Assembly: GCA_973895155.1 (NCBI GenBank)
Contig: OZ316899.1
Coordinates: forward strand, 2,687,455-2,751,454
Reading direction: 5' to 3'
DNA length: 64,000 nt
Source of the DNA: Marsupella aquatica
Taxonomy: Eukaryota; Plantae; Marchantiophyta
In this document: positions 5,200 to 42,729 of the stretch, piece after piece
Layout of the letters: the number at the start of each line of letters is the position of its first letter
Numbering within the stretch: position 1 is the first letter of the stretch
Notes under the pieces: generated by a model
The model's input: only the letters and a program-made list of their open reading frames with translations
What the model was told of the DNA's origin: nothing
The model's database searches: none
Position numbers and translations under genes: made by a program

Positions 5200-5525
5200 T
5201 TAGTCATTTTATAAACCCACAAAGTATATTTAAAGACTACCCTCCATAACCTTTTTAGTCGTTCCCAACGACTCACCATCGCAGCCTATAAAAGACTGAA
5301 AACGACTCACCAAAGCTACCCACACAAAGACTACAATAGACTGAACATCTAGTCTATTAAACGACTTACAAACCAGTTCTATAAAGGACTCAGTTGATTA
5401 TAGTAACAAAACATACGACTCGCAGTCATAAAAAGGACTGGAGTCCTTCCCAGTCGTTTCCAAGTCATATACGGTACTGAATAGTTGTTTAATGGGGTCT
5501 AAATACCCCCCAGTTTCTACTAGTG
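5200..5525. repeat. CACTA1 3' subterminal repeats and terminal inverted repeat
   Basis: Clustered acgact/gactac/agtcgt motifs in both orientations, followed by the TAGTG end. Confidence 0.8.
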
Positions 5526-7664: not shown

Positions 7665-8994
7665 GATTTGGTAATTGAGTAGTGCTTGCAATAGAGAATC
7701 CATGTGCTTGAAGAAGTGTATGGGTTCCTATAGGTAGCATGGATACTATTGTGCAACTATAACTCTCAGTTTTTGGATTCCCAGATGTGGATCACTCTGG
7801 AATTTTGTTGGTGTTTGAAATGATGATTTACTAAGTTGTATCATGTGGTGGATTGCATGATCGAGGACTACCATTTCTCTCCTTTTTCTCCACAAAAAGG
7901 ACTTGAGTCCTTGCCATTTTGCATTAAATGTGCAACATATCCCTCAATGGCCAAGATTGAGGATACGTATATCAAAGGCTAGATTTGAACTAGTGAACTG
8001 ATTCCATTAAATGAACTTTTTTGGATTTAGTAGGACCCTAGTAAAGCTTGCACTTGTATCCTCATATAGAGTACTTATGATGTGTTTAATGTCCTCAAGG
8101 CGAGTAGCCGTCGTTTACTTTTCAAAAAAAGGACTCGGAAGTCTTGGAAACCTACAATAAATGTCCTTGCAATCCCCGCCGGCCAGGACATTTTGAAAAC
8201 AAGGACTCCAAGTCCTTCCAACTTTGGCGCGATAGTCTCAACAGTAGTAAGGACTCGAGGACAAAGGGGTATTATTGAGAGTTTTATGCCTGAGCTATCA
8301 AATTTTACGAAGTGTTTCATGGTGGACACCAAGCAGCTTGAGGTCCATAGCCAAAATCAGTAGTGTTTGAGTGTTGGGGCAGGAAGAGAGAGCGACGAGA
8401 AATTGCAAACAAGTAGGTATTTTGCTGCACATTGCAAGATTGTCCATGTCGGCCCGGCCCATTCAAACCATTGAGATAATTACAGCCCGAGAGCTCTTGT
8501 CGTAGTAGAGTTTATTGGCAACAAAGGGAAGCTAGTGGAGGATGGCCAACTTACTTCCAGAAGCAATTTCATTGTTTTTTTCACATCTGAGCACTTTGAC
8601 GGGTCGCTGACATAGGTTTGGTTTGCACATGATCAAACTCTCAAAAATGATGGCTAGCATTCTTTTGATTCCTTAGCTGACTTTTTGATAGACCGTTGTA
8701 TGTACCCCTATCTGTTCGCGTGCTATTAACACGGGATTATCCGTCAGCTGCATTGGTTGGAGTAATGCAACCTTCTAATTCCGTTGTGTAATGCAGGTAG
8801 GCCGAGCGGGCGGTTTGTTTGAAGCCAGCGGAGGAAATTTTACCAGAGTCATTGGTGATTGAATCCAACCAACATCCATTTTCAATCCACAGAAGTCCTG
8901 AGGTAATAATGTAGGTGTTGGCTCGATACGCTTGCTTATACTTTGAGTTTTCGCCACAACTTTCCTCTGTACTAGCGTATTTTTGAATGCCGTC

Positions 8995-11495
8995 ATGGAT
9001 GCCTCAACTGATAATCCAAAAGCTCCTAGAACTTCTACTCTTGAGCTAGGAGAAATGGAGATAGTTACAGTCCCAGACCCTATTCTCCCTCGTAGCAGCA
9101 GAGTCTGGTCCACTAGCAAACCAACCACGTATGCCTCCCAAGCTACAGATCGTGCTTCTCCCAACTCTCCAACTCTTGTAGAGAGTATCAAAACTGCAAA
9201 ACCAAAGACTAAGGTGGAGCCGCCTCTAAAGCCATGGGATCCTAAAGATTATGTGAAGGACGCAAAGTATTTCCATGTCACATTTGGTCTTCCAAATGAA
9301 GGTGTTAATCCTCATAAGATCAAAGACATTTCCAAGGAGCAATTGGCCGAAGTGTTTGGAGAGAAAGACAGGAATGGGTATAAGTTGAGTCTTTGTGTGG
9401 GCCTCCCAATTGAGGAGGTTTTGCAGCTATCCCAAGTTGTGGATGGTTATGATGCACCAGTGAATGGATATATTCTTGTCTTTCACTTTCATCAAAGGGG
9501 CATATGCAGAAAGGATCCAAAGGCGAAAGGTGGACTGGTGTGTGTATGCGGTGTCCAAGCTGAAGGGGCAAATTGCCCAATGGGAGCGAGATGGCAAGGG
9601 TAAGCCAGATGGGCCTCCTTGCGTTAGGAGGTTGCGTCTGTATTCGCCACCAGTGCCTCAGGAATTTAGTGAAGATACTCAGAATCGGGTTAGGAAAAAG
9701 ATTTGTATCAAGCATCGAGCGCCAGGGGACAAAGCTCATCCGGGGACAGCCGATTCAGGAGCGGATTTTGGTAGCAAGGGAAGTGCACACAAGAGCGCAC
9801 ATCCCAAACCATTGGAGGCTGCCCTTTCTGCCCCCGCAACAATGCTTCTCCCTGCCAAGCCTATTTATCCTGTTGTCCCTATAGTGCCAAGAAGTCTTTT
9901 GCTTGCTATTCTGGATGGGCAAATAGTCACGATCAAATGCAGTCTTAGAGACACCCATGAGAGCATCAGTAAGGCTCAGAAGACTATGCAAGACTTGGAG
10001 GCAGCAAACGAGGATCATCCAAGACTCAGCTCTGGTCTGGTGGACCAACTTCAGAAACTACAGCAAGAATTGCAAGATGTGAGAATCAAAGTGAAGGCCG
10101 CAGACACCTTGTATGATGACATGTCAACGGAAATAGAGCTTGAGAAGCTCAAGGGAGAGCAAGATGAGGAGGTACAATGTCAGACCGTATATATACCTGT
10201 CCTGTGTCCATCAAACGATCTGTAGGCTGGATATATATGTTTAGTTGAGATGTTGGATTCAATTTAGCAGGATGAGACATTGATGCATTGACGATGAGCT
10301 GCAAATAATGTTGTCGTGTGCATATCTTTTTTGGGGTGGGCAGGAAAGCTATGTTGTTATCCTACAACAGAAGTTGGAGGAGGGTAACAAGGCCATGGAG
10401 GCTTTGAAGGAATTTGAGTCATTTATCCTAAAGGGGATGGCTACATTTGAGAAGCTCATTGAGACCGGGAAGAAGCGCTTTGAACAGTTACCACACAAGG
10501 TGTCTCGTTTGAAAGTTGTGGAATCACAGTTGGAAGGACATGTGAAGCGTTTGGAGTTGGCTGCAGCAGCTCAAAAGGCTGAATTGTCCATTTTGGAGCC
10601 TGTGTTGTCCAATCCATGTCCAGCATTGCAGCCTCGATTTGTTCCCACATCAACTACGATAGTGGGAACTGAAGTGTTTGTGAGTAATTGTCCAGTTTGT
10701 TGCCACGGGTATCATTGTTTCAATTGGGTTCCAGCAAGTTGTGGCCACGCCTATCATCCGCATTGTTTATTTACCTTGTTGGGGGATAAAACAAGGACAA
10801 GTTGTTGCTTTGCTTGTGGGGAACCCTTTTGTGAAGATTGGATTCGAAGTTGGGGTCTTCCAAAGAGAGCGGTAGACAAGCTACCGTCAGGTGAAGGCTC
10901 CTATATTCAGGATTTGAAGGCAACATGTGGGGCTAACAGTGCCCAGTTGGGCACACGTCATCACCTTTTGCAACAGATGCAGTCCACGCAAGTAGTGGTA
11001 TGTGTATAACCAGACTAGGCCTGCAGGTCATGTTTAGGTAGTTGGACAGTTTGAGTTTTTAGTTGGGCCATTAAGTGAATGTCGTCATTGTGTGTGCAGG
11101 AACAAGCCGAGGTCCAAGCAATAGTGTTGTTGAACAATGTGGACCACACTAGTGTGGTGCATGAACAGGGTGCCCCTGTGGATGAGTCTCCTGAAATGTC
11201 AATGTTCAATTCCACAGCAGCCATCACACTGCATGTGAGGAAGAAACAGAAGCAAGAGAGTGAAGTAGCTAGCAAGGTGACCAGTACCCCATTGACACCT
11301 CTTGAGCTTGGCACCTTGCCCTTCACTCCTGAGTCTCTCTCTCATGTTTCATTCAGGCAATTGTTGAACCTCGTTCAAACTGCAGCAGGAGAAACATCTC
11401 CTCCACAGTCCAGGAGTGCAATCCAATCCCAAGTTGTTCCTCCCACGTCATCAAACTCCAGGAAAAGATTGCAACTTCTTGTGAGAGACCCGTAG
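8995..11495 (+). pseudogene. Cargo gene of the Sola2-like element: unknown N-terminal domain, coiled coil and RING-H2 finger
   Basis: ORFs 8983-9603 and 9464-10225 are joined by a frameshift near 9480. Exon 10308-11009 has C-x2-C-x11-C-x-H-x2-H-x2-C-x13-C-x2-C (CPVC...SCGHAYHPHC...CFAC). The 3' end is uncertain and may extend to about 12490. Confidence 0.65.
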
Positions 11496-11699: not shown

Positions 11700-12030
11700 C
11701 ACACTAGCAGGACTCAGACAACAAGGGCCAAGGAGTTCAAGTCCTTCTTAAGGACTTTCAGTTCTCGCTTGAGCACTTGAAGTCCTTATTGGAGTCATGG
11801 GGCAAGGACTGGGAGTCCTTCGGCCATGACTAGGACTTGGAGTCCTTGGGCAGAGCCCTTGGGAAAGGACTAGTAGTCATTGGGAAAGGACCGGAGTCCT
11901 TGGGCAAGGACACTTAGTCCATCGACAAGAACACTGAGTCCTTGGCTAAGTCCTTTGGTAAGGACTCTAAGGATTTACCAAGGACTTGGAGTGAGGAAGG
12001 ACTTGAAGTCCTTGGGAAATCCTTGCAAAA
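11700..12030. repeat. Cluster of AAGGACT-N2-AGTCCTT palindromic motifs (Sola2-like element)
   Basis: Many aaggact/agtcctt half-sites and full sites, e.g. aaggactgggagtcctt and aggacttgaagtcctt. Confidence 0.85.
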
Positions 12031-15000
12031 GTCTGTGGAGTGAGAAAGTGCAAGAGTCTTTGGTTAGTTTGTTTGATTCACATTGTTGAATTCTTGATTT
12101 TGAGAATGAGGTGCTTCAGTTTTGCAGATGGAGAAGCTTAGCCTATATGATACTCTCCATGAGGTCAGGATTGATCAGATATGGGGTCTATGTGCTGGAG
12201 CCTTTACTTATGAAGGCTGTGGGGGAGTTTTGAGTGACGGCCATCCCTGCACCTTGGGAAAGCACAAACGGAGGTTGAGAATGCAGAATCCTGAGTCACC
12301 TTTAGGTCCTCGATCACGCAACAGACTCCAGCACTCTTGTTCTAGGGATGGGGAAGGAACATATATGTACTGTTTTGCTGTGCAGGTTGGCAATGTGGTG
12401 CTTCAAGTGAATGAAGCTAATGGTCTGCAGTTGATGGGGATCTCGGGCTTTACTTTGAACTACTGGCAAAGTGCGTTATTATGGTTTATGTGATTTTTTT
12501 CTATTGTTCTTTAGTCATGGCGAGCAACAGAACCATGCGGGTGTCCCCAAAGAAATCAAAATTATTGCCCCGCCGGTGAAATATTGAATATGTAATATTG
12601 AGTACATGCAAAAATGATAATTTAACTCTCTCAATTGAGAGACAAAGTGCCTCAAAACCAATAAAACTCCCACTGGGATAGACATTCAATATTGTCCTAG
12701 TAAAGCCCCTTCAGGGTCGGACGAGTAGAATGGGAAACCATGGAAAGAACCTGAAGACATCAAGTATTTAGGTGACAAGGAATCTGTTCATGGATATGGA
12801 TGGATTTAGGGTTTGTGCTACGTAAGCACTTTTCTGCAATTTTATAGAGGCACTTTAGCTACTCAGAAAAAGTCTTGAAAATTGTTAGCATAGAGATTGT
12901 AGATAGTAGAAGCAACGGCTTAAGATTCACCACTTTTGGAGTTTATGATTGAAGTGAAAAATAGTCAAAGATGATAGATTTGTATGTTTTGTCAAAAAAG
13001 TATAATGACACTTAGTCATTCCGACACTTTTGAGGGACACTACCATTACAACAGTACTTACACAATGTTACTGGTTCTGCCTAACGGGTTGTGACCAACC
13101 ATTGTTGATGCTAAAATGAAATGAAGGTGAAAAATAAGTCAATGCGCGCCTTACATTAAATCTCTGAACAATTTTACAGTTCCATAAAAACCAGCCTCGC
13201 CTACGAGACAGAATTCTTGGAAATCTTCATGTAAGACAAAACTAGCCTCACCTACGAGACTGAAACTTTGGATATCCTCATCACACACATCCAAAACCTA
13301 CAGAACCTACACCTGCAGCGAGTCTTACAGAACCTACACCTACAGCGAGTCATAAATGGCTTCTATAGTGTCTGAGTCTAGTGTGTAAAATCTAGCACCT
13401 CGTCCCTTGCCTCCCTTGGGCACGTCACATGGTGTCAAACCAAATCAAATGTGAATGACTTCCCCTGGGTGGCAGTAGCTGAAAGGAGAAGCAGAATTGA
13501 AGACAAACTTGTTTTCTGATCCTGGATATGGTTGGAACCACCTCCCCTTTATGGCCATGTCCCCTGCCTTGAATTGTACCTGGTACCCATCAGCAAAATT
13601 CTTTGTGATTGTGTGGAGCACCTCTTTGCACTGATAAATGTAGAAATCTACATTATCTTGATTTGGTTGACAAGCACGACATGCATAGAAATCTCCCAAT
13701 TGGACACATTCTGGCAGAGAGATGTTGTCAAGCAATCCTTCACCCTCTCCCATGTTCTGTACATTAGGTCTGACATCTGCCTGCAATACCCCTTTGACAA
13801 TCTCTAGGCAATACTTGCCTACCCATTCCTTGTTCTCACAATTCATTGGATCATCATCAACACAAGCTACACAAAAACAACTGAGCTCTCGAACTTGCAA
13901 CAATGTTGACAAACTCTTACTAAATCCATCAAAGCAGTGCAAAGATCTACAATCCTTGACTGGATCACAATCCCACTTCTTCCTTCTGTTTACAGTGCCA
14001 ACTGGAATTTCCCAAAAAACACGTCAAACGAGTTGCACATCACCATACTCTTGCAATTGACCAACGGCAAACTTGTCTTTGCAAAACTTCACCACATCTG
14101 ATGCACCCTCTAGACGATGACCATTGATGCCTTTCAGTTGCTCAGTTGCAAGCCCGGTCTTGATGTGACCTCCGAGAGCATCCTATTACAGCATACCAGA
14201 AACACAAATTAGAAGTCTCTTAGGTGTGCAAGTCTGGACATCCAACTCCATTAGAAACTTACTACACTTCAGTTGAAAGGCGGGTATTCACAGAATTGGT
14301 TGCAAACTAGTGTGTTCAAAAGATACTCACAACAACACCCTTCCCATGGCCAGAGGCATGGAAGAACCATTTCATCCATGCACCATACCTCGAGTAGTAC
14401 CTACTGACGTAATAAAACGGTCTGCAGGCCTTGAACTGAGAGGCAGCCCCATCAGACCAAACCCAATGTTGATCAACATGAATGCCCTGATCAGCCATCC
14501 ATTCCCAATGTGCATCCATGCAAGGTTGCACAAAAAGAGTGCCATGACAGTTATCGTCACTAATGTAGAAATGGTAATCGGCTATAATATCACGAGTCCT
14601 ATCAGCATTTTGTGCTGCTTGCACAGGCCTACCCACTGCAGCTTCAAGTGAATCGGCATCTTCCCTATGTCTATAGGTAACATGGATTAACAATGTCACT
14701 TGCTTATTGTCCCAATGTTGACTCTGAATCTCATTTTGAGGCAAAAAAGTGTAATTTTTTGAAAAATCTATTGAAGAAACAATTGTCCCTCTTGGAAATG
14801 TTTTGAGACATTGTCTAAATTGTCGCGACTGCCAATGTGCTCAAAAGTTATGCACAATAAATGTTTTCATGGTATCCAACACCGCCCTCTTAAAATCTAC
14901 CATGGGAGTTTTCTTATAAACCATCCTCAATCGCCTAGCCTTCTTTGTTGCGCTCTCTTCAGACCCTTTCTTTTTCTCTCTCTTTTGTTGGGCAGTGTCA

Positions 15001-15574: not shown

Positions 15575-16586
15575 TTAGACTGAAGTCCTTCAGTAAGGGT
15601 TGGAATCCTCATTGGAAGACTACCAGCAAAGCTTAAGGACTAAAGTCCATCGGGGAGGAGTACTACAATCATTTGGTCAAAGCGCTTCACTCGTTGACAA
15701 AGGACTAGTCTATAGACGTAACACAACCCAGGACTATAGTCCTTGACAGAGGATTAAAGTCCTTATCGAAGGACTACATAGTCCTCTGATGAGGACTAAA
15801 GATAGTCCTCGACAAAGGAGTAAAGTACTTCAATAAGGACTACAATCCTTGAATAAAGACTATAATCCTTTACAAAGGAGTCAAGTCCTTAAGTAAGTAC
15901 TATAGTCCTTTACAAAGGAGTAAACACTTGAGTAAGGACTATAGTCCTTTACAAAGGACTACAGTTCTTGAAAGAATAAGGACTATAGTCCTTTATGAAA
16001 GCCCGTACCAAGGAGTAAAGTCCAAGGACTATTAGTAGTCCTGTTAAAAGGAGTAAAGTCCTTGAGAAAGGACTATAGTCCTTTACAAAGGAGTAAAGTC
16101 CTTGGGGAAGGACTATAGTCCTTTACGAAGTAGTAAAGTCCTTAGTAAGGACCATTAATAGTCCTTCACAAAGGAGTAAAGTCCTTTACAAAGTAGTAAA
16201 GTCCTTGAGTAAGGACTACAGTCCTTTACCAAGTAGTAAAGTCCTTGAGAAAGGACTATAGTTCTTTACAAAGTAGTAAAGTCCTTGAGTAAGGACTATA
16301 GTCCTTTACAAAGTAATAAAGTCCTTGAGTAAGGACTATTAATAGTCCTTCACAAAGGAGTGAAGTCCTTTACAAAGTAGTAAAGTCCTTCAGAAAGTCC
16401 TTTACAAAGTAGTAAAGTCCTTTGATAAGGACTATATAGTCCTGGGCAAAGGAGTACAGTCCTTTGTCTAAGGGCTACAGTCCTTTTCCCAGGCAAAGGA
16501 GTAGAGTCCTTTGCTAAGGACTATATAGTCCTTGACGCTTAGTGAGGCCCTTGGCTAAGGAGTATAGTTTTTATCCAAGGAGTAAA
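15575..16586. repeat. Intronic minisatellite-like array of aaggactatagtcctt / aaggagtaaagtcctt units (about 20-bp period)
   Basis: About 30 agtcctt-type units counted by eye. The array resumes at 27685-27900 on the far side of the MULE. Confidence 0.9.
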
Positions 16587-17493
16587 GGGTCATTGTAGCG
16601 TGCGAGGAAACAGTAAAAAAATTCCTCGCACGCTATCATTTTCTCCTTGGAATACCCAAAATTTGGCACGAAAACAACCTCGCTAGCAAAAAGTGACGCT
16701 CGCTAGCCTAAAAGGAACCTTCTATTCCACCTATTTATTTAACTCCCGTTGGGTTTAAAAAGAGATCCCGACGATGCATTGGTACATATTATGTATTCCC
16801 TGGACACGAACGGTCGTCGATGGCACCATAATTAAACATATAATTCTACAGTACATCAGGCCAGCGAAGTCGCTAGCCATAACTCTGCCCATAATTCTCG
16901 CACTAAATACTGCGGTCATGACCCACACGAAAATCACTCATTAGAAATCATGGGTGTAAACCGTTGCAGCAACAACACTAATCCGTATCATATCACGACA
17001 GAATCCAATGTCCCCTTCCTCATGAGTGAAGCGTGAAACGCGAAACCGTTTGAGAGGATCCGAGGCTCCGAAAATGCACTATATGTCATTCGGACCTCTC
17101 GACTCATCTCCATTCCTAACAGTGTTCTCATTATTTGACTTTCATCGTCTCCTCACTCTTTCGTGATCGTTTTTGCATCGCAGAGTAACTTCAATTGAGC
17201 TTGTGTTGTCATATCCGCGGGCGAGGAGGGGATCTGGTGTTCTCGGGTGTGTCGCATTCTTGCAAAGTTTTTGTCGCACAAAGAGATGTAAGTTTGATAC
17301 GGGAAGACCTCTTAACAGCAAATAGTATTATTGTTCATGAGAAAGTCTGGTTTTCCAAGTTCTCTTTTTCCTTCTCTTGGTTTTGCGCATTTTGACTCGA
17401 TCATCTTGGATTTTTTGAATGTGACTGTTTCTATTTGGTAAACACATGTTGAGAAAGTAATCTGATACACAGAAGCGTTTGTTACAGACATAA

Positions 17494-17922
17494 ATGGCAA
17501 AAAACGATGACCCTTCCGCTCCAAAACCCAAATGGGTTCTGGAGGTCCGCCGCTACAACGCCAAAACTGACGGCCCAATGGACTCGCCACCAAGCTCTCC
17601 TCCGGCAAGGAAGAGTGTTACCCCTCCGCTGAAGGCTAGATCATCATCCAGTCGGGTCCCGCCTGTTGCCTCTGCTTCAACTCAGCGACCTGCACTGCCG
17701 AAGGAAACAACTTCAAGCGTTGTTTCCAGAGCACCAATGTCTTCTCGCACAAACGTATCCGTTTCTAAGGGAGTTTCAAAGAAGCGGAAGAGAGAGGAGG
17801 AGGAGTCTTACTGGAGGGACATCGACATACACAACTACTGGACATCCGACATCCTAGCTTTGTTCGATTATGATACGGATTCGGAAACAGATTCAGACGC
17901 CTACAAGGCAACATCTCCATGA
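17494..17922 (+). CDS. Small uncharacterised ORF inside the MULE (142 aa, S/P-rich, basic KKRKR patch, acidic tail)
   Basis: Uninterrupted ATG-to-stop ORF; no recognisable domain. Confidence 0.4.
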   Translation: MAKNDDPSAPKPKWVLEVRRYNAKTDGPMDSPPSSPPARKSVTPPLKARSSSSRVPPVASASTQRPALPKETTSSVVSRAPMSSRTNVSVSKGVSKKRKREEEESYWRDIDIHNYWTSDILALFDYDTDSETDSDAYKATSP

Positions 17923-18808
17923 ATAGTACCCTATACGACAATCACTCCGCGTTGCGAACCCTCGTAGTTTTACAGTTAATCTCTGCCAAGTCCGTGACCT
18001 TAAAATGAAATGATCGGTAGGACACGGACATTTTGTCAGTTACAGATGTTTTGATAAATATTGGACAATATTCGAATAAAGCTTCGGAAGTTTTTTCAAT
18101 TTCATGAGTGCATACCTTGCTAGCGAGATCGCTAGTAAATATTGCCTACTGGTACTTGAGTGATTTACGTTGTGGATGACATGCGAGCACGGAAAACATC
18201 CTCTCTTCCTCCTACTATGATACAGTATCCGACTCTGACTCCGATGCGTACAAGGCAGGGAGCCATTGAATAGGAAACATTTGTAGGGGCATAAACATTT
18301 TGTAGACTGTGTCTATTTCGTAGATCTGGGATCCGAAAAAGTTCTTCGACACTCAATGTCCAACACAGTTGTAAGGGAGAACATCTTTGTTCATTTTGAA
18401 ATAACTTCTTGAGAAGACTGCCGACTGCAATGTTTGGACTTACAGTACTAGTTTTGCTAGCGACATCGCTAGTAAAACTATGCATGACTAAAATGGTTTG
18501 TTTTCTCGAATGTATATCCCAAAAACATTAAAATACATGAGTTATTGAACTCTACGTTATGTAGAACTTGGTCAAAAAGAAACCGTTTACGGGAAACCTA
18601 AAACTTTACTTTACGGGTTTAATACCAGAGACCTCGCTAGAAAAATAAACACTATTTCCGATACGTATAGAATAGTAATAGACCCTCGCTAACATTACAT
18701 ACACAATATAATTAGTGAGGTGGAGGACTTTCCTCTGTTCTGAAAACCAAAAAGGCGACAAAACTAGGGACGCTGAAACGTTCACCTCAACGGATAATAG
18801 AGATTAAG

Positions 18809-21800
18809 TCAACTACACTGCAACGGAATCAAACTCCTTACTTCAGCAACAGTCAGAATTGGCTGCTTCACAAGATCGTCTCTGTCTAGATTCAGTGAGA
18901 ACTTGTTTAAGTACACCCAGAGGAGGTGTTTACAAGACATATAGGGTCTTCCTCTCGTGTGTCTCTTGTAGAAGTCATCACATGAGCAAGAAGGAAAGCA
19001 ACACACTTGGACCCAGTACTTGTGTGCAATTTTCGAATCTGTCTCGTGAGTGACGATAAGATATTGCCATCCCCACCCGTTTCCGAGGCATATCTTCTCA
19101 CTTCCAATGACTCTCATATGTTCGTCAATCGTAGATCGAATGCGTTTGAGAAGCTCCGGGGTGTTCTGGAAACGTTGACGAACGCCTTTCCCATTCCGGG
19201 TCTTGAATCTACGGTTTGGAATACCAATGTCAACTCTTTCTGGGAAGGAGTTCACATCAATTCGGAGGTCAACACGATTTGGAGAGGAGAACGACCCAAT
19301 CGGTGCTGGATCAGAGTATGATAATCCTCTGATTTCAATCCCATTTCGAAGAAGAAAGTCAATCTCTGTTGGGGTCAGCCTGGTCCCACGCTGGACTTGC
19401 AATGCCTCAGGTGGTTCCGGAAGCTGGGCAAGAGTCCTTCTGCCACCTGTTTTATGGCACCTATTATTCGGACAGAAGTATAGAAGCTGACGATGTGGAG
19501 ATGACAACCTCAATCCGTGAATCGCAACACCAACCACTCCAGCCCGGAATGCCTTCATTCCAATTTCTTTGATGAGATTCTTGCACTCATCTCTTCCAAA
19601 CACACTTCGGTCCACTCGTCCATTGCAAACAGGTCCACTCCCTTTTCCACTCCGCCTCAAGTGCCAGGTCCCATATGTCACATCAACCTCTTCAACAACA
19701 GGGATCCTTCGGGGTGCATCCCGAATTTCATCCCGATTATTTTGAGGCTGTGGTATTTCTCCAACGTAGTTCGGGTCCTGTGTTGTATCTCCACGGCTAA
19801 GTTCTTCACCATCATCTGATATATTTATAACTTCACGAGGAAGAGAAGGTCCATGGCAAGTGGGGTTGTCTTCATCGCCAGGAAAGTCTGAAGGTCCACC
19901 AATATCAGAAGCACCGCTGAAGTTACCAAATTCTGTGTAAAGATTTCTTCTTTTCAAACTAGACCGCGATGCCACTGTGCGCAATATCTTATCATGTCTA
20001 TGAGAATCGTTTTCATGAATAGAAGCAGAAGCACTACCCTTCCGTTTCCCTGATGTTGTTCTAAGATCTCCATGTAAAGGCACAGTTCTATAGAACTCAT
20101 ATTTTCCAGATGATTCAAATAGTAGATTGGATGCCTTCTCATAGGCATCCATAGACCCCATTGTATCTGCATTTCTGAAGGCCAGCTCAAATATTGTAGG
20201 ACCATTCCCACGGTGACACCCTTCCAAGTATGCAGTGAACGCTGCAATCTGTCCGGCTGCTCGATTCTGGTCAACTTCACAGGCTTCAATCAAACCAATT
20301 TTCTTCTTCGGCTGGCAGGAACGCATTGATGCGTGAGCAGATTCAGCTCCCGCACAGTTTGGCATCAGAGCAGACTCCTTCGCAGTTTGCGTCTGAAAAA
20401 TGAGCAGAGTTAACACTTGTATTCACTAGCGATATGTCTATTTTGAGACAGTCTAATGTTTCAGTCGGTGACCAAAATACATTTACGAAAAGAAGTTTTA
20501 TTGCTAGCGATCTCGCTAGCTTAAACTCATCAGAAAGAATTCACCGTTACTCACCACACGAATAAAGTTACCCCATTGTCTCCACCGCACAACCCACCAT
20601 GAAATCCACCCTTGTAGTGATTTAAGCTTGGAAGGGTGACAATTCCCCTCTTTCCACCATTTTTGAATGTCTTCGGCGATACGATATGCTTCGACGTATG
20701 TTGGAGCAATTCTTAACTTCTCCCACATCTTATAGTGCTCCGCATGACACCCCTCCTTGATCCCCTCCAAAGTGTGTCTTCTGAGAGATTGAGAGAGATG
20801 GAACGCGTCACTATGCTCTTTCAGAGGATTTTTGACACCTCCAAAAAATACCCTTCTCACAGAAATCCAGCCAGCCTCCGCATTGTCTGCTATGAATCCT
20901 CCAATAATGGGATTATGCACTCCATTAACCTCCACGCAGTTTCAAGCGACTCTGTGTCTTCGGCTCTCAACTCGCAAGTGAAAATTGTACACAGAGCGCG
21001 GTAATTATGGTCATACACGTGTGCGCTGAAGGTCAACCATCCACTAGTGATACGATGCATCACGTCAAAACTGACCCACGAACCTTCCAATGCTCCTCCA
21101 GCCTCCATGCTCCTCAAAATTTCCACACCCGATCTAGGACCATTTGTACTCATTTTGAATACATGCGCTCGATCATTTCTGTTTCCTTGACCGGGAAACA
21201 GGTACCTCTGCACGAAAGGGAAATTGTTACGTGATTGCATTTCACGAAGTGAGTCAAGTTCTCCTTTTTTAGGATTATCCATCTTCACACTCCGAAGAAT
21301 AGCTTGGAACTTTGGAGCGGTAGAAACTACTCCGATCGAACTCCAAATTTCTTGTTGTTCTTCTCTCGACAACTGAGCCGATGATTCTGGATGCAATAGC
21401 GAGACAAGGTTCCCAATTGACTGGTTTCTCAGACGTGCAGGAGTTGAGACTGGATTCAACCGATGGACCCCTAAAACCACATCTTCCGCTATTTTTCTCG
21501 CAGAACGAGATTTTCCCTTCCAAACAGGGTGATCGTGGAATCCCATATGCACAGCCAATCTGGACATATTCATTGAAATGTGACTCTCCAAACCTGGCTT
21601 AGGGTACACATACAACAGTTTTGCCGGGCATTCTCGAATACAGAGAGGCCTCTCTTCACAGAAGCCACAGACAAGTCCTCCCTCACTCACTTGCTCTCCA
21701 AGACGAAAGATGTCAGGCAGCAACCCTTTCCCTTTGAAAGAGCAGTCATTTTTCACTCCAGTATGTTTCAACTTCCGGCAACCCAAATTATGGCATTCGA

Positions 21801-22598
21801 GAATTCCAGCGCAACGAACTTTTGACACAGCCCAATGAAACCTTGGCTTCAAATTCGCAGATGTAGTCACTAGTCTCGTCCAAGGATAGCCGTCCTTCTC
21901 TCGATCCATATCTTGGAGACCTCCTCCCCTCCCGGCCCCCTCGACTGGAGGAAGTTCAAAAACAACGTTACCATTGTATGTCGATGGCAGAGTCGAAACC
22001 TGACATTCATTCCATTGATTCCCTCTTCTAAATTGTGCAAGTTCACTCGCTCCACTGATATTGAGAAAAGCGTCATAGGCACTCATCCGATACACTGTGG
22101 TCATGCTATCCCCAGTCCTTTCAATTAAATTTGTCGCTAACCCTTCGGGTTCGGAACCATCTCGTGACTTCATCGAACCACAAGATGTGTCTTGCCTTAT
22201 ACTCTCTGGAGATATTTCAATGACCTCGGGAGCTCTGTCTTTGGGAGGCGTCCAAGATCAATCATAGGAGTTTGATGACCGGGATCTAATTCCATGGGTT
22301 CCAAAATGACATCAGGAAAATCATCTTTACTGGACAGAACCTCGACACAAGATCCAACCTTCAGCGTCCATACCTTCCCGGAAGTACTACTGTCCTCTCT
22401 CAACTCGTGACTCCTTGGCCCATTTTGAGAAGACAACTCAAACAACTTCATGACAAGGTCATCTTTTGGAATTCCAAAACGAGTTGCAAGGAATGACTCT
22501 GTCACCCTAACCTCCGACGAGTCAGGGGCACTTGGGAGTACCACCATGTCTCCCGTCATTCTACGCTCCAAAACCACCTTGGAATTCATCGTCATCAT
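18809..22598 (-). pseudogene. MULE transposase with WRKY/GCM-like Zn region, DDE core and SWIM finger
   Basis: FELPP...YPWTRLVTTS...CAGILEC; SFDVMHR (D1); FIADNAEAGW (D2); DAFH; AESAHASM (E); SWIM CSCDDF...CKHLLWV. Frameshifts near 22200 and 20930. Intron at about 20395-20550. Confidence 0.85.
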
Positions 22599-23261
22599 CT
22601 CTTCTCAACATACAAAAATACAACGACTATGTTTTGAATCGCACATATGAATCCTATTTGCAGGACCAAAACTGGGTTTTTCCCAACGGAAACAACAATC
22701 CAAAAAGATTGTCAGTCGATTCCCGTTGATTTTACCATTATTTTGTCTTTTACTCAACGTATAGGGACGTCTCTCATGCTAGCGATCTCGCTAGCTTGGT
22801 TTTGATAGTTTTATGGAAAGAAAATCGTTGATTTCAACTCTTTTAATGATACCTGTGTCATTGAGTTTATGCCAGCGATCTCGCTAGCCAAAAAGTCAAA
22901 CTGATTTTTGAGGAAGTTTACCGTTAGGATTCCGTTGGGAATAGTCAACCGGTACCATAATGTCAACGGTACAACTGGAGTATTATTTCTGGATAAGATT
23001 ATCGGTCGTGAAGGTTGTTGTTTGGGTTTTCCAAAAAGTACAACTAGTGGTCCCTGCCAGGAGATTTTTGTTATTCCTTACATCATACTGTCGATCATTG
23101 TCAGTATTCACTATCGTAACTCTGTAAGGCTTCGGAGGGAGTTCGTAGCAGTTTGTACGGCGTCCTAATTCTCCGAAAGGAGGTGCTCTGTGGACGTTTT
23201 TGACGCGTGCAGCCGCTGTAGTCTCCGGGCTCGAGCACTCTTCTCCAAAGGGTTTTATTTC

Positions 23262-26200
23262 ATGGAGTCATCCTTGTCTCCAGAGAGTATTTCTTCGAGA
23301 GGATCGTTTCAGTCGAGGGAGTCGACAAGGAGAGAAACTAGGTCCACAGCGAACAAGAAAGCGCTTGCAGCGGGATTGAAGACTCCAAGGCGGGCCAAGA
23401 TGGTGACAGCGGTAGATGTAGTTGCTCCTATGTTTGATCCGAGCGCTTCGGAACCTTACACGGTTGTCATAAACCGTCATCTTCACTCGTTTGGAGTGAA
23501 TGAGTTCGGATTTGCATTGGCTCCCCCCCGAATTCCTCTGTGCCGGATGAGAAACATGCAGATTGTCCGGTCTCTGCAGAAGGATTCCACTGCGATAGAC
23601 ACATTGAAGTCCGAGTTCAAAACGCAGGGTTACATCGAGGATGCGCCTCAATTTTACGTTCAGATGACAAACGAGGATGGAGAAATCCAGATCTGTACAG
23701 ATGCCATCCGCGAAACTTGGGATGATATTTGGGTGTTGCAAAACGAGGAGTTTGAGCGCGAATGTGATTCTCATGTTTCTTTCCAGATCCTCAAGGACAA
23801 AATGTTCTGTGTTTTCGATGGAAACCATCGATTGTATTCGTGGAGCCAACTGGCAGAGGAACATCCGGATGATATTAAGTACCATCCTCGAGTGGTCTGC
23901 AAGATCTTTAAGGGTGAAAAGAACTCTTTCGTTCAGATCGAGTTGGCTATGCACGCATTGAACAGGTGGGACTTCTCATGATAAGATAGTTCTGAAATTT
24001 CATTTTTACCGAGTCACTTTCAGCTAGCGATCTCGCTAACATGAGGCATGTTGTGGCAGGTTAACTCAATGTCATGTAGAGAATTCCTGGGTTTTGGAGG
24101 CTGAACGCGTCCAGAAGATTCTGAACAATGACTTATCCGTTTACAAAGATATCATCGACGCTGAGAATTACAAACTTTTCCAGCAGAAGATGGCCAATGT
24201 GCGAAAGGCCGCATGGTATTCGAAGAACATGACGCTGGATGCCTGCACTTATATTCTATCCGCTGCTAACATTGCATCGCAGACCGAGGACCTTAAGAAG
24301 AAATTTTCTCTTAAGGAGGCTCAAGGCGAGCCCCTTTCCAAGGCTGCACAGGACTTAGCAATGCGTGACATGATGAAAGAACAACTTGCTGATTGGAATG
24401 TGAAAGTTCCAAAGATCGGTCCATTACTAAATCCTGAGTTTGGAGACTTTTTCAAGAAATGTGTCGAAATGCATAACTACTGCGAGAACAAGAGAAAGGA
24501 GGCCCAGAGAACAGATGACAAAGGCAGGGGAAATGTTTCTTGTGGTCTTGATCGAGCTCGATTGTTCACTGGTGTGACCTCTTTATCCCCAGAGCTCCGA
24601 TGTACACTCCTGGAGGCACAGTGTTGTCCTGAGCTTCGGAAAAAATTCTTTCATCCAGGTCAATTCTCAGATGGTGAGACTAAGCTTTGGCTTCATCGTT
24701 GGGCAGTGTGGGAGCAAGTCGAGTCAATTTCGTCTTCCCTCATGTCTGAAATTGTTTCTGAGGTAATGCATACTATCCCTGAGTCGAGGATCCTTACGTC
24801 TTCAGAGAAGACGAAAGCTTCGCTAATCCTTGACATTGAGGAGGATTTTGAGGATTTCCAAACTCGTGTGAAAACTCATTTTTTCAAGCAGATTTGGCCA
24901 CCCAAGACAGGAGAGAAGGTAGACATTACATTGTTTCGGAGGAGAGCGAAGAGATACACGTATCGATTTTTTGTAGACAGAGAAGTAGCAGACAAATTTT
25001 ACTGGTGGTCCTACCCAGCCTGTTTCTCCCCATGGATAGCTGGGGTTAAAGAGGACCCTACAAGTGATAAGTTTGGGGAATATTGTATGTTTCCTTGCGA
25101 GGGAAGTGAAGCTCCAAGGAGATTGAGCGAGTGGGAGGTTCTTCATTGTCCATGGTATTTGGACTCGGACAAATGGTCTGTGACATTTGACACTGCAGAG
25201 AAAGCAGCTCTTCACATGATCAATCGAGGATTCCTTCCGGAATCTTACATCTCCGAGTCCAAATTGGCACCCACTGATGCTGAAGTTGGTGGTTGCGAGG
25301 CGATGGAAAAAGCTTGTCTTGGTGTAGCTGCCATAGTGGATAGGAGTCGAGCACGGAAGCCAAGAAAAGGAGCATTGAAGGACACATCCAAAGATGGGTC
25401 CCAGATTTCCGGAAAGCCAAGTAAGTCTGTTAATTGTATGTTACTTTTTATTTTTAAGTCCGGATGTGTGTCGAATATACAGACACTAATGTCTTTTGCT
25501 TCACAGAGAGGAGGAAGGGAGCGGCTTCTGAGAGTTTGAAGAGTGGAGCAGATGATGGTGAGGAACCTCAGTCCCCAGATGCCGAAGTCACAACAAAGAG
25601 CGCAGTGGATTTAGGAAGTATAAAACGTTTGAAACGGAAGCGGAACATCCAGATTCTTTCAGATTCGGACGATGAGGAAGTTTCAGTTGCTCAAGGTGTT
25701 GCTCGGATGTGTGGTTTGAAGATGGATGGGCAGCGACATTTCCTGGCTCGTAGCAATTTGACCGATACTGCAAACTCAATTAGCGTAAGTAAAGTGAGGC
25801 CATCTTGGATGGGAGATGGAGATCGATGGATTACTGGGATGTCAAAGAGCGTAGAGTGCCCGAACCATGTCGTAATTAATGGAAAGCCTTATGCTGGGAT
25901 TGGAGCACATTTGGGATTCATTTCTCTTCCAACTGGGCATAGAACAAGCGTTACAGACAAACAGGTTCCGTCTTGGAATGTTTGGAGCGAGAAACTCCCA
26001 TATTATTTTTTTGGAGTGATGAGACCAATGCTTTCAGATGATGGATATGTTGCTGTCTTGCACAGCTCAGACTTCAATCACATGAGGCAAATATTTACGG
26101 CAGTCGAGCAAAAAAACAAATTCAAACATGTGCAGCAATATACCATTTTGTTGTCCACCCCTTTATGGAGGGCAGATATGGATATTGAGGTAGTTATCCC

Positions 26201-26878
26201 TTGAATTTCTTGAGAGTTTTAATGCTAGCGATGTCGCTAACAAAATTATAATTTTCAGCTACCAAACATATCTGGTTTATGTGTTAATTTTCTATTTTCC
26301 GACTAAGTTAATGCTAGCGAGCTCGCTAACAAAGTTAGCATTGTTTCTGGTGTATTTTGGTTTTTATGCAGGTGTGCACTCTCATCCTGGATGTTTTTTG
26401 TCGGGTGGAATTTAGTGCAAAGATTCCTAAAGACCCAGCGTATGTTCCATTGACGTCTTCGGAAGATGCAAGACATAAGTCAATGTTGAGTGTTTGTTAC
26501 CCTAAGACTGACCCCTGTCCAGAAGCGGCTGTTGCTGGATCAAAAAGGCTTTCAATTGGGTTCATGCAAGCCGTGATGGAATTCCTCACGAAGCCCAGAG
26601 ATATAGTCCTTGACTAGACTGTGTGTGACGGTAGCTCGTTTTTTGTCGGAGAATTCTCCGGGAGATTTGTTGTCGGTGTTGAAGACAGGGACATTCTCCA
26701 TTGCTGTGCAGAAAAAACTTTAAACAGTGTTCTGGCGAGGCATTCGAGCAAGGCAAAGCAGATTAGGGATCAGCCAGCCAAGGTTAATCAAGACGCTGGG
26801 TCGGATGATGAGTTCACGATTCCAGGGGATGAACAGGCTGGGCCTTCAAGCGAGAAAGACAAATTCGACCTGGAGTAA
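23262..26878 (+). CDS. MULE cargo gene: ParB/Srx-like N-terminal domain plus C-terminal beta-class N4C/N6A DNA methyltransferase-like fold (about 1085 aa; one in-frame TAG)
   Basis: Exons 23262-23965, 24060-25420, 25507-26189 and 26372-26878 splice in frame at GT-AG. Motifs FCVFDGNHRLYSW (about 23800-23845), HLGFISLPTG (degenerate motif IV position) and KRLSIGFMQAVMEFLTKPRDIVLD*TVCDGSSFFVGEFSGRFVVGVED (motif X/I/II pattern). TAG at 26615-26617. A further 3' exon (26913-27320) is possible. Confidence 0.7.
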
Positions 26879-29459
26879 AGTACTTGGCCTCTTCTGATGT
26901 CGGACTCCCTATTTGGTTTCTTTTGTTTCTTTATTTTGTTGCTCTTCGTCAACTGATGTCGGTGGTTGCGTCAGTGATAGGAGGGTGGATTGGTTTTCTG
27001 AGGAGAGATTCCGTCTTCGGAGGGAAGTTCAGGAGTCCATTGTGGTTACTCCTGAGAAGCCTTTTACTCTTCCATGCTATGCTGAGACATCGGCGAGGCA
27101 AGTTGATGAAGATCCTGTTATCTTGACTTGGGAATCAAAAGGACTTCGGTCCATGAGAGGTGCTCGAAGATATCTGGATTGTTCAAGGTTTATCGACAAT
27201 GAGGCGGGGACAGTCCGTCAGTATTTAGATGAGTCTGCCGAGTCCACAGAGAGGGAGACCAGTAGCGATCCTAGTAGTAGTGACATCTCTGATGAATCAG
27301 AGGATGAAGTTTATGACTGAACAAGTAAGAGGAAGTAGGACTGGATGTACTGGTCGAAGTTGACTCTTACCGTTTTTCTGTCTTGAAGTTGTTGGCGATC
27401 CAACCTCTCAATGTAAAGAGGTTCCATATTTTGATGGGAGTTTCTAGTTTTGGTGATCCTTTTTAGATGATTAAAACGTGTGTGGCTCAAGTATGGAATA
27501 CTTATGAAAATCATGCAGGATTTTTCATTGTCATATTCTTTTCATTATTGTAAGAGGTGGAAAACTAAGACTGTTTGGGCATTGTTTTCGTGGAATGTGA
27601 GAGAAATTTATCCGCCAGAATGCTTCGCTAACAATGTTGCCTCGCTAGCAAAATCTCCTGTTTCCTCGCACCGTACAACTCCTCAGGAGTAAAGTCCTTT
27701 GACTAAGGACTTCACTGCTATCCATACTCCTGAGTCAAGGACTATATAGTCCTTAGTGATTAACTAGATAGTACTTTGCCAAGGACTCAACTCGTTTCTC
27801 ATGCCAGACTTCACTTGACAAGGATTCAACAGTGCTTCCTGAAGGCCTAGATAGTCAGTCCTGAAGGAATTTTCCTGGAACAGAGTCCTTCCTGCTAGGC
27901 TATATAGGACGTCAGGTCTCACAAAATTATTCAGATCCTACCTTAAAGAAAAAACTAGGCGGTTACAGCAGAGCACAATGGCTAAAGCACACATGAAGGA
28001 AAACTACTTCTCAACATCTGCAGATCGTATTATGAGTTAAAATCAAAAGTGGCAAATCAATCATGGAGAATTTCTCACCTGTGTATCCTCCAGCTAGTGC
28101 ACTTGATGTGTTTCATACATTTTCCGCCCTAGTTGCAATCTGGCTTCATTGTTCTTACATGGAGAAATCCGAGTGTGGGTTTCCCAAAAGTGTTCCACCT
28201 GTTTTTGAACTTCATCAGAAATCTTATCTCGACGTACCTTTCTTTCCCCCATAGGATAAGTTTTTTCACGATCTTCATCAATCTGCATCCTGATCTTAGA
28301 TGCCCTATGAAGATTTTGCCGTTGTATACCCAAAGCTTGAGCTAGAGATGTCTGCTGCCTTCTATCTACACATGTCTTTCCTACAAGTGCTGACAAAACT
28401 TGGTAGTTTGCAGCAAGATGGTCTTTGCGCTTCCCTTGCTTCACTATGCTCAAGGTTTTCCTCACATCACATAATGCAGCAGCTACAGCCCAATCAATTT
28501 TAGGCGAACCTAGTCTTGTAGACTGGTACTTCTTCAAGTATTTGTGCAACCAGATACCAGATAGTACTGCCCTCCTTGCACCTACATTGAATGTAGCGGT
28601 CTTCTCCAAAATGTACCTAACTATATCTGATAACACAATTGTAATGCACCTTCTCTTTTGGTTGGGAGTTACACCATCTTCTGGAACAGAGCGCTTGCTC
28701 CTTTGGTACTCAAATCTCTTCCCGTCTGCATCCTTCCTCCTCTTCTCAAGAATGGAATCACAACCACAATTATCGTGCTCACCTTTATTTAGTGGATGAA
28801 GGTGGGCTGCATGCACTTGAGTGCAAGCAGTTTGGGTGCTCTGCCTTGGCATTTGAATGTGGGCGTTGACCTGTGTTGGAATGCTTGCCCTTAGGGTCCT
28901 CCGCCTAGACTCTAAAATCTCAAAATGGCATGAATGCGCAGCCTCCTTGAGATTTTCACTTTCTTCCCGGGCTGTACGCAACATCACAGCGGTAGCTTCA
29001 TGAGCCTCACTAGTAATTCTCATTGCCTCTTATTGCCCAGCAGCCAATAACTCTCTGTGCCTTCGGTTGCCATCAATCACTAAATCTTGACATTGCTGCT
29101 TAGCACTCTCCATCATGAGATTGCACTGTTGTTGTGTTTCATGAATCATTTCATCAATGGTAACTGCCTGTTGACCACCTATGTGCTGACCATTTGCTAT
29201 TTGCTCTTGTCTTTTCAACTTGGATTTGCAATTTGCCAACCTTTGCTTCTCCAACCTCTCTCTTGCTAGGGCATCGGATACCTGATTAAGAGTAGCCATT
29301 TCAGCCTAATCATGGAGCATCAAATACGTCGGGGTGTTCAACTTCCTTTACCAATCAAAGGCCGCCCACCCTCATAGAATCAAATTCACCTACGTCCCAG
29401 GGATCCAATTTCAATTCATGACTTAGAACATACCTCACAAAATCATCACATTTAATCTC

Positions 29460-41040: not shown

Positions 41041-42729
41041 AAACTTATAGAGAACCCCAAATTTCCAGTGACAAAACTAATAATTATGCATGGTTGTGGC
41101 AATTGCAGGAAGTACTCTCAATGCATTGAAACCACCAATTTCAGAGGCAGATTGTTCTGAGGGAGTCTTGCTTGAGCAGAGCAACCCAAACTTCCGTTGG
41201 GGCCTTGAGTTCTCCAGAGTTGATTTTGATTATCTTAGCACAACAAAGAGACAAGAACCAGTGTTGTGCATAAAGGTCAGAATGTCAGAAGGAGAGACTC
41301 TTGTAATTGGACTTGTAGTCTTCGTTGGAATTGAAGGAAGAGGATTTGTTTCAGTCATTCTTGAGCTCCATGAAAGAATAAGGTGGGTTAAACTTCATCT
41401 CCCATCAAAGGCGTATTCCTCAGAGTTCAATATCAAGTGGTCTGCAGCTGGAGAACTTGGCATGTTGTCAATGGGATTTTTCCCAAAATCATATTCAGCT
41501 CAGAAAGTGATTGCAAGAGTGAAGGGGATTCTTCCACCCGACCTCATGTATGGGTTCCAATATGTGAAGCTAAATATCCATAAAAACCAAGGGAATTATA
41601 CAATGTCGGTGACATGGATTTTAAATAATCTGCTCGACAAGGCAGGTTTCCTATCTTCAGAGTTAAGTGTTTGGCTTGATAAGAGCATTGCATTTGATGA
41701 GGAGTTTGTGATGGATAATGCAAAAAAGTGGACAATTCACTACCCAAGCCGATGAATGTTCCACCGGTAGCGGTGAACAAGCTTCCACCTGTAGTTGTTA
41801 ACACGGAAGTTCCCAAGCCACCAAAAGTATCCCAGGAGACAACAGGGACCGCAAGAACAACAGCTGGGACCGCAGGAACAACAGTTGGGACAAGCACCAA
41901 AAGAGTGGTAGGGAGGCAAAGACAAGGAGAGAGCAAGGAGCACGAGAAAATTGAGACACTGCCAAAGGAACCCGAGAAGAAGCCAATAGGGAAGAAGAAA
42001 TAGAAGACTGACAAGTCTATCGTGCGGTCAACCCCTGCGGAAGTACAGATGCTCCCAGAAGATGAGGGAGACAAACTTGATGCCCGTGAGGAGAAGAAGG
42101 TCTTAGAAGGAAATGATGTTCTCCAGAGAATAGAGCAGTACTATACTTTTGGTATAAATGAACTGTTTTCTATTCCAGTGGAGAAAATTTTGCCTGCACC
42201 GGCAAGATTATGTTATAGGATGCTCAATAGTACCCATGTGAAGCACATAGCCAAATCCATGGTCAAAAACCTTGGACATGAACCTCATGTCGCGGACCTG
42301 CTTCCTTACAATCCGAAGCTTAGAAAGTTGCTCCATTTTGACAGCACGGAGAACGACTGCAAAGACTTTCTTGCAGGTGTGAAGAAAGGCGAGATTGGCT
42401 TCTTTGCCATCAGTGGGCAACATTCGGCTAGGGCGGCCAAGTGGGTTCTCAAATGGGCCAAAATTGATGCCAAGTTGATAGTATTGGCAAAAAAGTTAAA
42501 ATACAGGAAGTCTAGATTATTGTCAGACCTTACACCATCGGCTATATTGGTTGAGCACTCAATGAGATCAAATGCCATCAATTCAATGATGGTGTTTCAA
42601 AGATACAATTGTTCATGCAAGGAAACAATTCCTTGAATGCGGAGCACCAAGAAAGCCAAAGCACGGGGATAACAAGTCAAATGCCCAAGACAATCAGAAA
42701 TTTCAGGTGAGAAACGCTTTTCTTGTTTG

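Follow-up and report, generated by a model that had tools for sequence, protein, structure and literature searches.

An inactivated transposon accessory gene in Marsupella aquatica, from a family that joins a GNHR domain to a methyltransferase-like domain without its catalytic motif

The liverwort Marsupella aquatica carries a transposon-borne gene of four exons at 23262..26878 (+ strand) of the window analysed here, a stretch of 64,000 nucleotides (contig OZ316899.1, positions 2,687,455 to 2,751,454). Comparison with its relatives identifies it as a copy of a previously undescribed accessory gene, conserved in a Mutator-like transposon lineage of liverwort-type genomes; the family was not described in the literature searched. 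This particular copy is, judging from its lesions, recently inactivated and non-functional. The intact family protein, predicted to be about 1100-1200 aa long, consists of three parts: a domain with an invariant GNHR motif, a helical region of about 450 aa and a C-terminal methyltransferase domain. We give a probability of about 0.5 to the overall reading that the gene is an inactivated copy of an accessory gene and that the family protein works without catalysis as a factor for element-specific DNA recognition, comparable to the VANC protein of VANDAL elements.

Splicing of the window sequence gave a product of 3255 nt, i.e. 1084 codons followed by TAA, from four exons separated by three introns of GT..AG type. 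This agrees with the original prediction of four exons spliced in frame at GT-AG sites with a single internal stop, the TAG at 26615, and the motifs DGNHR, ISLPTG, DIVLD*TVCDGSS and GRFVVGVED were all found at the places it had named. Exon 1 (23262..23965) encodes a low-complexity N-terminal tail followed by the DGNHR domain, which appears ParB/sulfiredoxin (Srx)-like and of the DGQHR type, with an IPLCRM motif at 23532-23549 and DGNHR itself at 23817..23831 (aa 186-190). Exon 2 (24060..25420) encodes the family-specific region of about 450 aa, which is mainly helical and without a known domain. Exon 3 (25507..26189) leads from a basic/acidic linker into the motif IV to VIII half of the methyltransferase-like domain, where ISLPTG (25920..25937, aa 827-832) occupies the position of the catalytic motif IV. 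Exon 4 (26372..26878) contributes the half with motifs X, I and II, including DIVLD*TVCDGSS at 26600-26638 and GRFVVGVED at 26660-26686, and ends in an acidic tail and the TAA. The introns measure 94 nt (intron 1, 23966..24059, GT..AG), 86 nt (intron 2, 25421..25506, GTAAGT..AG) and 182 nt (intron 3, 26190..26371, GT..AG).

The predicted exon structure has comparative support. The spliced window protein is collinear end to end with the 1207-aa protein P0122 (KAL3677308.1) of Riccia sorocarpa, gap-free across junctions 1 and 3, and the homologous reading frames at three further loci (L004-L006) are interrupted where the exon junctions of the window fall. The position of intron 1 is kept in relatives, and many homologues of the N-terminal domain stop directly after 'MH..N', which is this position. 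Four sequencing runs that contain the sequence gave hundreds of short genomic-type contigs of 90-100% identity that cross the introns. An exhaustive search with exon 2 returned 118 relatives, 19 of them below 1e-30; those named belong to two liverworts, Riccia sorocarpa and Calypogeia fissa, and Riccia has many paralogues with 51-94% identity. With a profile of the N-terminal domain, 227 proteins were recovered in genome and metagenome assemblies.

Profile and fold comparisons establish the C-terminal ~250 aa as homologous to the beta-class N6A/N4C DNA methyltransferases, in line with the amino-methyltransferase fold that had been proposed. A profile (A4) was built from the window pieces, the closer relatives at L004-L006, the homologue at a further locus (L002) and Riccia paralogues, and its ten best matches among PDB sequences were all beta-class DNA amino-methyltransferases. 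The best match was M1.HpyAVI/DpnA (5hek, E=5.6e-9), CcrM was matched at 6.9e-6 over profile positions 26-228 of 241, i.e. nearly the entire domain, and further matches were TTHA0409 (2e-4), M.MboIIA, M.RsrI, rotifer N4CMT and M.PvuII. When an AlphaFold model of the Riccia domain was compared with known structures by Foldseek, the top 34 rows were all beta-class N6A/N4C DNA methyltransferases, CcrM among them at 2.5e-9. The permuted motif order of the beta class was also seen, with motifs IV-VIII before X and I-III. The Pfam family PF01555 (N6_N4_Mtase) was not matched by the window pieces at E<=1, the Riccia members scored 23.7-26.2 bits, below the cut-off of 26.7, and a precomputed match to it exists for the relative P0134. 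The UniRef label 'Trimethylguanosine synthase' of P0120, P0122, P0123 and P0133 was rejected, as the best profile and fold matches were all DNA amino-methyltransferases.

A catalytic motif IV of the form (D/N/S)PP(Y/F/W) was absent from every lineage examined. The degenerate DPPY position pointed out in the original prediction is therefore a feature of the family and not just of this copy, and because the degeneracy is family-wide, a role other than that of a DNA-modifying writer is reasonable. The relatives retain the lead-in 'G.F.Q.L.E..T..GD.V.D', the G-x-G loop and 'GR..(V/I)G.E/D', so that the G-x-G of motif I and the acidic residue of motif II are both kept in them; in the window the S-adenosylmethionine (SAM) loop reads V-C-D-G, with the stop before it. 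By its sequence the family resembles a pseudo-enzyme under selection, possibly one with SAM binding retained.

The N-terminal domain is quite probably a member of the ParB/Srx superfamily. In an alignment (A3) of 40 of the 227 homologues, the G, N, H and R of DGNHR were invariant (40/40) and the D was present in at least 90%, while Y78, W107, W111 and F118 were likewise invariant and IPLCR nearly so. The conserved Arg-containing G-x-x-R / DGxHR motif, which in the superfamily follows the third strand, is present. Of the NCBIfam models, TIGR03187 (DGQHR) gave the commonest sub-threshold matches (4/40 members, best 0.012); window exon 1 matched it at E=0.038, with 13.7 bits against a cut-off of 58.85, and the Dnd-associated DGQHR model TIGR04172 was matched once, also below threshold. 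The sub-threshold Pfam matches were to DUF1015 (4/40, best 0.0042 in a relative, aligned on the motif), to DUF5531 of unknown function (also 4/40) and to DUF6551 (one member); we take DUF1015 and DUF6551 to be members of the ParB clan. Language-model features placed exon 1 near DUF3723 clusters (score 0.95, 182/256 features), and the nearest structural neighbours of the DUF3723 match include ParB_N, DndB and DUF1015. The predicted order of secondary-structure elements is compatible with ParB/Srx; the structure model built from a 14-sequence alignment has a pLDDT (predicted local distance difference test score) of 56.6 and found no counterpart in four structure libraries. ParB-like domains are used in Dnd systems (PMC5512222).

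The description of the gene as 'ParB-like' is thus upheld by the invariant GNHR and by the recurrent weak matches to families of ParB/Srx type, but no ParB/Srx family profile was matched past threshold, and the quality of the structure model did not suffice for a fold search. On the window pieces, Pfam, PADLOC and NCBIfam gave nothing past threshold, and a tblastn search of exon 1 against phages gave nothing relevant. A canonical partition ParB of the ParABS type was rejected, there being no Pfam match to ParB_N, HTH_ParB or ParB_C and no ParA-like gene in the element. Membership in DUF3723 (PF12520) was rejected as well, as Pfam gave no match at E<=1 and the similarity is one of language-model features. 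At another locus (L003) a homologue of the GNHR domain (10001-10717, 14005-14451) lies beside a DUF7869-type gene and not beside a SWIM transposase, and for this reason the GNHR-domain family seems to travel also with another transposon type.

The original prediction had placed the gene on a MULE (Mutator-like element), beside a transposase. The gene does lie within a transposon, adjacent to a MULE-like transposase with a SWIM finger, and the pairing was found to recur in other genomes. In the window the transposase is encoded on the minus strand at 18809..22173, divergent from the accessory gene, in ORF (open reading frame) pieces 22173-20890, 20935-20516 and 20416-18809, and a SWIM-type CxCx15CxH motif lies in its C-terminal part (18926-18988, minus strand). 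At Riccia L001 a homologous transposase (38% identity) is located divergently upstream of P0122, and at L002, from another assembly, a transposase(-)/accessory gene(+) pair shows ~31% identity. The element is likely a MULE on account of the SWIM motif and of a weak match of the Riccia transposase homologue to PF21056 (ZSWIM1-3 RNaseH-like); the Pfam MULE and SWIM models gave no match. Downstream of the gene there is a small ORF of 135 aa (26913..27320, + strand), which gave no family match. Riccia L001 has a homologue at the corresponding place (14004-14120), and L004-L006 likewise have the accessory gene together with the small downstream ORF, possibly the element's third conserved gene.

The non-coding parts of the element are rich in palindromes. 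In the window, CTAGCGA-N2-TCGCTAG occurs in 10 copies compared to 0.08 expected, at 16861, 18120, 18457, 18625, 20504, 22779, 22872, 24024, 26225 and 26314 (spanning 16861..26329), and nowhere else in the 64 kb. All ten copies lie in spacer or intron, including the spacer between the divergent genes: intron 1 holds one (24024-24039) and intron 3 two (26225-26240 and 26314-26329), while intron 2 has none. Half-sites were also seen at 16680, 16700, 27625 and 27642. The ends carry another palindrome, the 16-nt AAGGACT-AT-AGTCCTT, in a left subterminal array with a 20-nt period (15576..16584) and in right subterminal copies (27690..27776), and the 23 nt at 27734-27756 are a perfect inverted match to 16514-16536. 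This 16-nt palindrome also clusters at 5384-8249 and 11740-12007, possibly in fragments of related elements.

The palindromes of the relatives differ in sequence. At L004, 20 copies of CTAACGA-N2-TCGTTAG, where 0 would be expected, are spread over the two flanks and each of the three introns, and the palindrome of L006 is GGCTAACGG-N3-CCGTTAGCC. In Riccia L001 and L007 the promoter spacer carries CCGGCGA-N3-TCGCCGG and the ends carry CCAGCGG-N3-CCGCTGG, the Riccia palindromes amounting to 24 copies in ends and promoter spacer, and the more divergent Riccia L008 has CGGCGGA-N-TCCGCCG. The sole constant across the lineages is a CpG in each half-site. At L004 (1-5810), six copies of the 22-nt palindrome TTACTAACGA-N2-TCGTTAGTAA expand intron 1 of the orthologous gene to ~680 nt, and introns 2 and 3 hold three and four copies, respectively. 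We infer that the accessory protein recognizes the palindromes because the two co-occur, because the symmetry of the sites is of the dimer type and because VANC of the VANDAL MULEs provides a precedent.

It is possible, though rather doubtful, that the protein instead serves transposition directly, either as a MURB-like cofactor or as a ParB-type nickase/NTPase that partners the transposase, and that the palindromes are transposase sites. Such a role would suit the conserved divergent pairing with the transposase, and arrays of subterminal repeats are classically bound by transposases. Dependence on accessory proteins that bind to the transposase is common among MULEs (PMC12973397), and methylase fusions with a ParB-like domain are able to nick DNA (PMC5512222). 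However, each element carries two distinct classes of palindrome, terminal ones and those of the introns or promoter spacer, for which two DNA-binding proteins fit better than one, and the N-terminal-domain homologue at L003 adjoins a DUF7869-type gene, i.e. a different transposase.

We consider it unlikely that the protein is a DNA methyltransferase that is still active by way of a non-canonical catalytic loop and would mark the palindromes with N6-methyladenine (6mA) or N4-methylcytosine (4mC) for self-recognition or protection from silencing. The beta-class fold, the glycines of the SAM loop and the motif II acid are kept in most lineages, the Pro of motif IV and the subsequent LP...L.D.G...H block are conserved, and the bacterial ParB-methylase fusions are active enzymes (PMC5512222). 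The motif IV position itself argues otherwise, as it reads SLPT in the window, CFPH, FLPK and STPT in L004-L006 and DLPT or DMPS in Riccia. The second Pro alone is conserved across these five lineages and an aromatic residue is never present: the first residue varies (S, C, F, S, D), and the base-stacking aromatic is replaced by T, H, K, T or T. The catalytic position is thus without conserved chemistry across lineages which are otherwise under purifying selection.

The best-supported reading of the coding sequences is that the accessory protein is kept by purifying selection in the active element lineages. Between the Riccia subfamilies represented by P0122 and P0133, synonymous sites were saturated (140 differences/177 sites; proportion of synonymous differences, pS, 0.79), while the proportion of non-synonymous differences (pN) was 0.23. 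Among the copies of the window species, the 26 best-supported coding variants, taken from the 40 best-supported of 267 variant sites, comprised 16 synonymous and 10 non-synonymous changes (binomial P=0.003 with a transition-weighted neutral synonymous fraction of 0.33). That the gene is a captured host or bacterial fragment, carried in the manner of Pack-MULE cargo and functionless for the element, is very improbable: the stop in the window copy and the neutrality of recent Riccia copies would fit, but the intron positions and, across L001, L002 and L004-L006, the gene arrangement are conserved, with position and orientation beside homologous transposases kept in three or more assemblies at protein identities of 30-45%, pN is low although synonymous sites are saturated, and a stand-alone host paralogue was not seen.

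For the window copy, the claims that the gene is nearly intact and that its product may bind SAM were not supported. The only internal stop of the spliced frame is the TAG of codon 998 (26615..26617), where motif I in its canonical form, VLDPF, has the 'P'. A TGG codon is a plausible ancestor, as had been suggested: one relative (L006) has W at this site, but the others have M, L or F. In the degenerate SAM loop that follows, TVCDGSS (26618..26638), the first Gly of G-x-G is replaced by Cys. This is so in the window copy only; the relatives have GLG or GCG, Riccia has GGWG, and a paralogue from the same genome (sequencing runs X3/X4) has T-I-G-D-G-S-A, with the Gly kept. Of the two frameshifts claimed for the adjacent transposase one was confirmed by comparison with the continuous Riccia frame, at ~20893-20899, which falls within the DDE core. 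Because of the stop, the Gly-to-Cys change in the SAM loop and the frameshifted transposase, the window copy is regarded as a pseudogene of a functional family.

Two observations were made on the kinds of changes found among copies. Over 22900-27100 of the window, the differences seen in the four runs (X1-X4) were mostly transitions, and G>A was the commonest in all four (31-51 places per run); C>T exceeded T>C only in X3 and X4. This pattern is expected from deamination of methylated cytosines. In L005 (~214-675) and L006 (~1440-1877), which come from one assembly and have diverged, a stop stands where the window has Arg (A-I-R-E-T-W). The shared stop is compatible with recurrent change of CGA to TGA at a methylated CpG, or with common ancestry.

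In the mechanism we propose for the family, the protein encoded by the element would bind, as a dimer, to the CpG-centred palindromes that each element lineage has at its ends, in its introns and in the promoter spacer. The N-terminal GNHR pocket, most likely of the DGQHR/DndB-like branch of the ParB/Srx superfamily, would serve as an NTP-dependent switch or as a nickase. The methyltransferase domain, which keeps its fold and mostly the Gly of the SAM loop and the motif II acid, would not methylate DNA, its catalytic tetrapeptide being lost, but the dead module could be a reader that binds DNA, SAM or both. The outcome would be self-recognition, either as shielding from silencing by host CG methylation, as with VANC, or as assembly of the transposition complex. 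A more far-reaching version, which we put forward only tentatively, is that a ParB-like/methyltransferase-like module of the style of bacterial mobile elements has been turned, in a lineage of eukaryotic DNA transposons, into a non-catalytic, sequence-specific self-recognition protein that binds parS-like, CpG-centred palindromes diversifying together with it, and that serves as a shield against CG methylation or as a mark for the transposase.

Several results weigh against reading the family protein as an element-specific recognition factor. L002 has no over-represented perfect palindrome, and the palindrome binder could equally be the transposase or the product of the small downstream ORF. 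ParB was absent among the PDB matches of profiles A2 and A3, which were only spurious matches to ribosomal proteins, and for the model of the N-terminal domain (pLDDT 56.6) no match was returned from pdb, atlas, afdb_clusters or pdb_via_wide. The Riccia C-terminal domain was modelled with low confidence (pLDDT 46.6). The contigs of the sequencing runs lie on the gene without spliced joints, i.e. they are genomic data. As to selection, the near-identical Riccia copies P0122 and P0130 differ by 6 synonymous and 30 non-synonymous changes, approximately neutral with a dN/dS (ratio of non-synonymous to synonymous substitution rates) of about 1.4, although 36 changes are too few for a firm ratio. 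As very recent Riccia copies evolve neutrally, purifying selection is concluded only from the deeper comparisons. Neutral recent copies are the usual pattern expected of transposons, in which active lineages are selected and individual copies decay.

A conserved and selected accessory gene of this kind unites two domains typically found in the DNA-modification and partition machinery of prokaryotes. To our knowledge, transposon accessory proteins are few and poorly understood, and VANC is the only well-studied sequence-specific anti-silencing factor among them. If the proposed shielding is true, the family would be a second transposon anti-silencing system after VANC, and a mechanistically different one. 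If the protein reads the palindromes, it would offer a tractable system for transposon self-recognition and evasion of CG methylation in early land plants, and would show how a dead methyltransferase can be put to new use in reading DNA.

Elsewhere in the window there is a second putative ParB/methyltransferase-like gene (42022-42636 and 48852-51079, + strand) with the motifs NPHAKP and SKPRDLILDFF, split by a Ty1/copia-type gag-pol insertion at 43592-48267. Homology of this gene to the accessory family was undetectable by tblastn, and hhalign gave E-values of 0.08-0.56, so it was treated as independent.

The nearest architectural relatives appear, from domain order, to be the ParB-methylase fusions of bacteria and phages, which combine PF02195 with PF01555. 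Both have a ParB/Srx-type N-terminal domain followed by an amino-methyltransferase, and both are carried on mobile DNA. The fusions are prokaryotic proteins of ~400-450 aa, proven to be active and with DPPY in its canonical form, whereas the family described here belongs to a eukaryotic MULE, has introns, a 450-aa helical insert and a long linker, has lost the catalytic motif, and matches ParB only below threshold. A bacterial example, Bce_0392 of Bacillus cereus, is cited in PMC5512222. With the beta-class amino-methyltransferases (M1.HpyAVI/DpnA, CcrM, M.MboIIA, M.RsrI and rotifer N4CMT) the family shares a homologous domain in which motif IV is permuted to stand before motif I, but here motif IV is degenerate, and the window copy scores nothing on PF01555 while its relatives score just below the cut-off. 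METTL14 and the methyltransferase domain of DIRS1 elements are parallels in that selection has preserved the fold although the catalytic tetrapeptide is lost, in DIRS1 also on a transposon; they belong to the MT-A70 and PCIF1-like clades, and RNA-related roles have been proposed for both. The inactive domains of DIRS1 are described in PMC4738411, and the eukaryotic ParB-associated methyltransferases catalogued there are of clades other than that of the window family.

For the N-terminal domain, the DGQHR/DndB-type proteins show D-G-x-H-R in the same local context, gave the best though weak family matches and partner DNA-modifying enzymes, but they are prokaryotic and stand-alone and the scores are far below the cut-offs. 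The Dpd system is a DNA-modification system with such ParB-like proteins. The DUF3723 genes of fungal Starship transposons resemble exon 1 in language-model features and are, similarly, conserved genes of unknown function carried by large DNA transposons, but they are fungal and without a reported methyltransferase domain, and PF12520 was not matched here.

Among the accessory genes of MULEs, MURB of maize MuDR is comparable as the second gene of an autonomous element, required alongside the transposase. Its architecture is unrelated, and the two genes of MuDR are convergent, whereas the accessory gene and the transposase described here are divergent. VANC of the Arabidopsis VANDAL elements binds element-specific motifs in non-coding DNA (PMC5735166, PMC10398659). 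An anti-silencing factor of this type also lowers the methylation of its element. The motifs of VANC are not CpG palindromes and it has neither a methyltransferase-like nor a GNHR domain; for the present family it is the motif side that was observed, binding being predicted. Both are accessory genes of MULEs, accompanied by short, lineage-specific motifs in non-coding DNA that diversify with the element.

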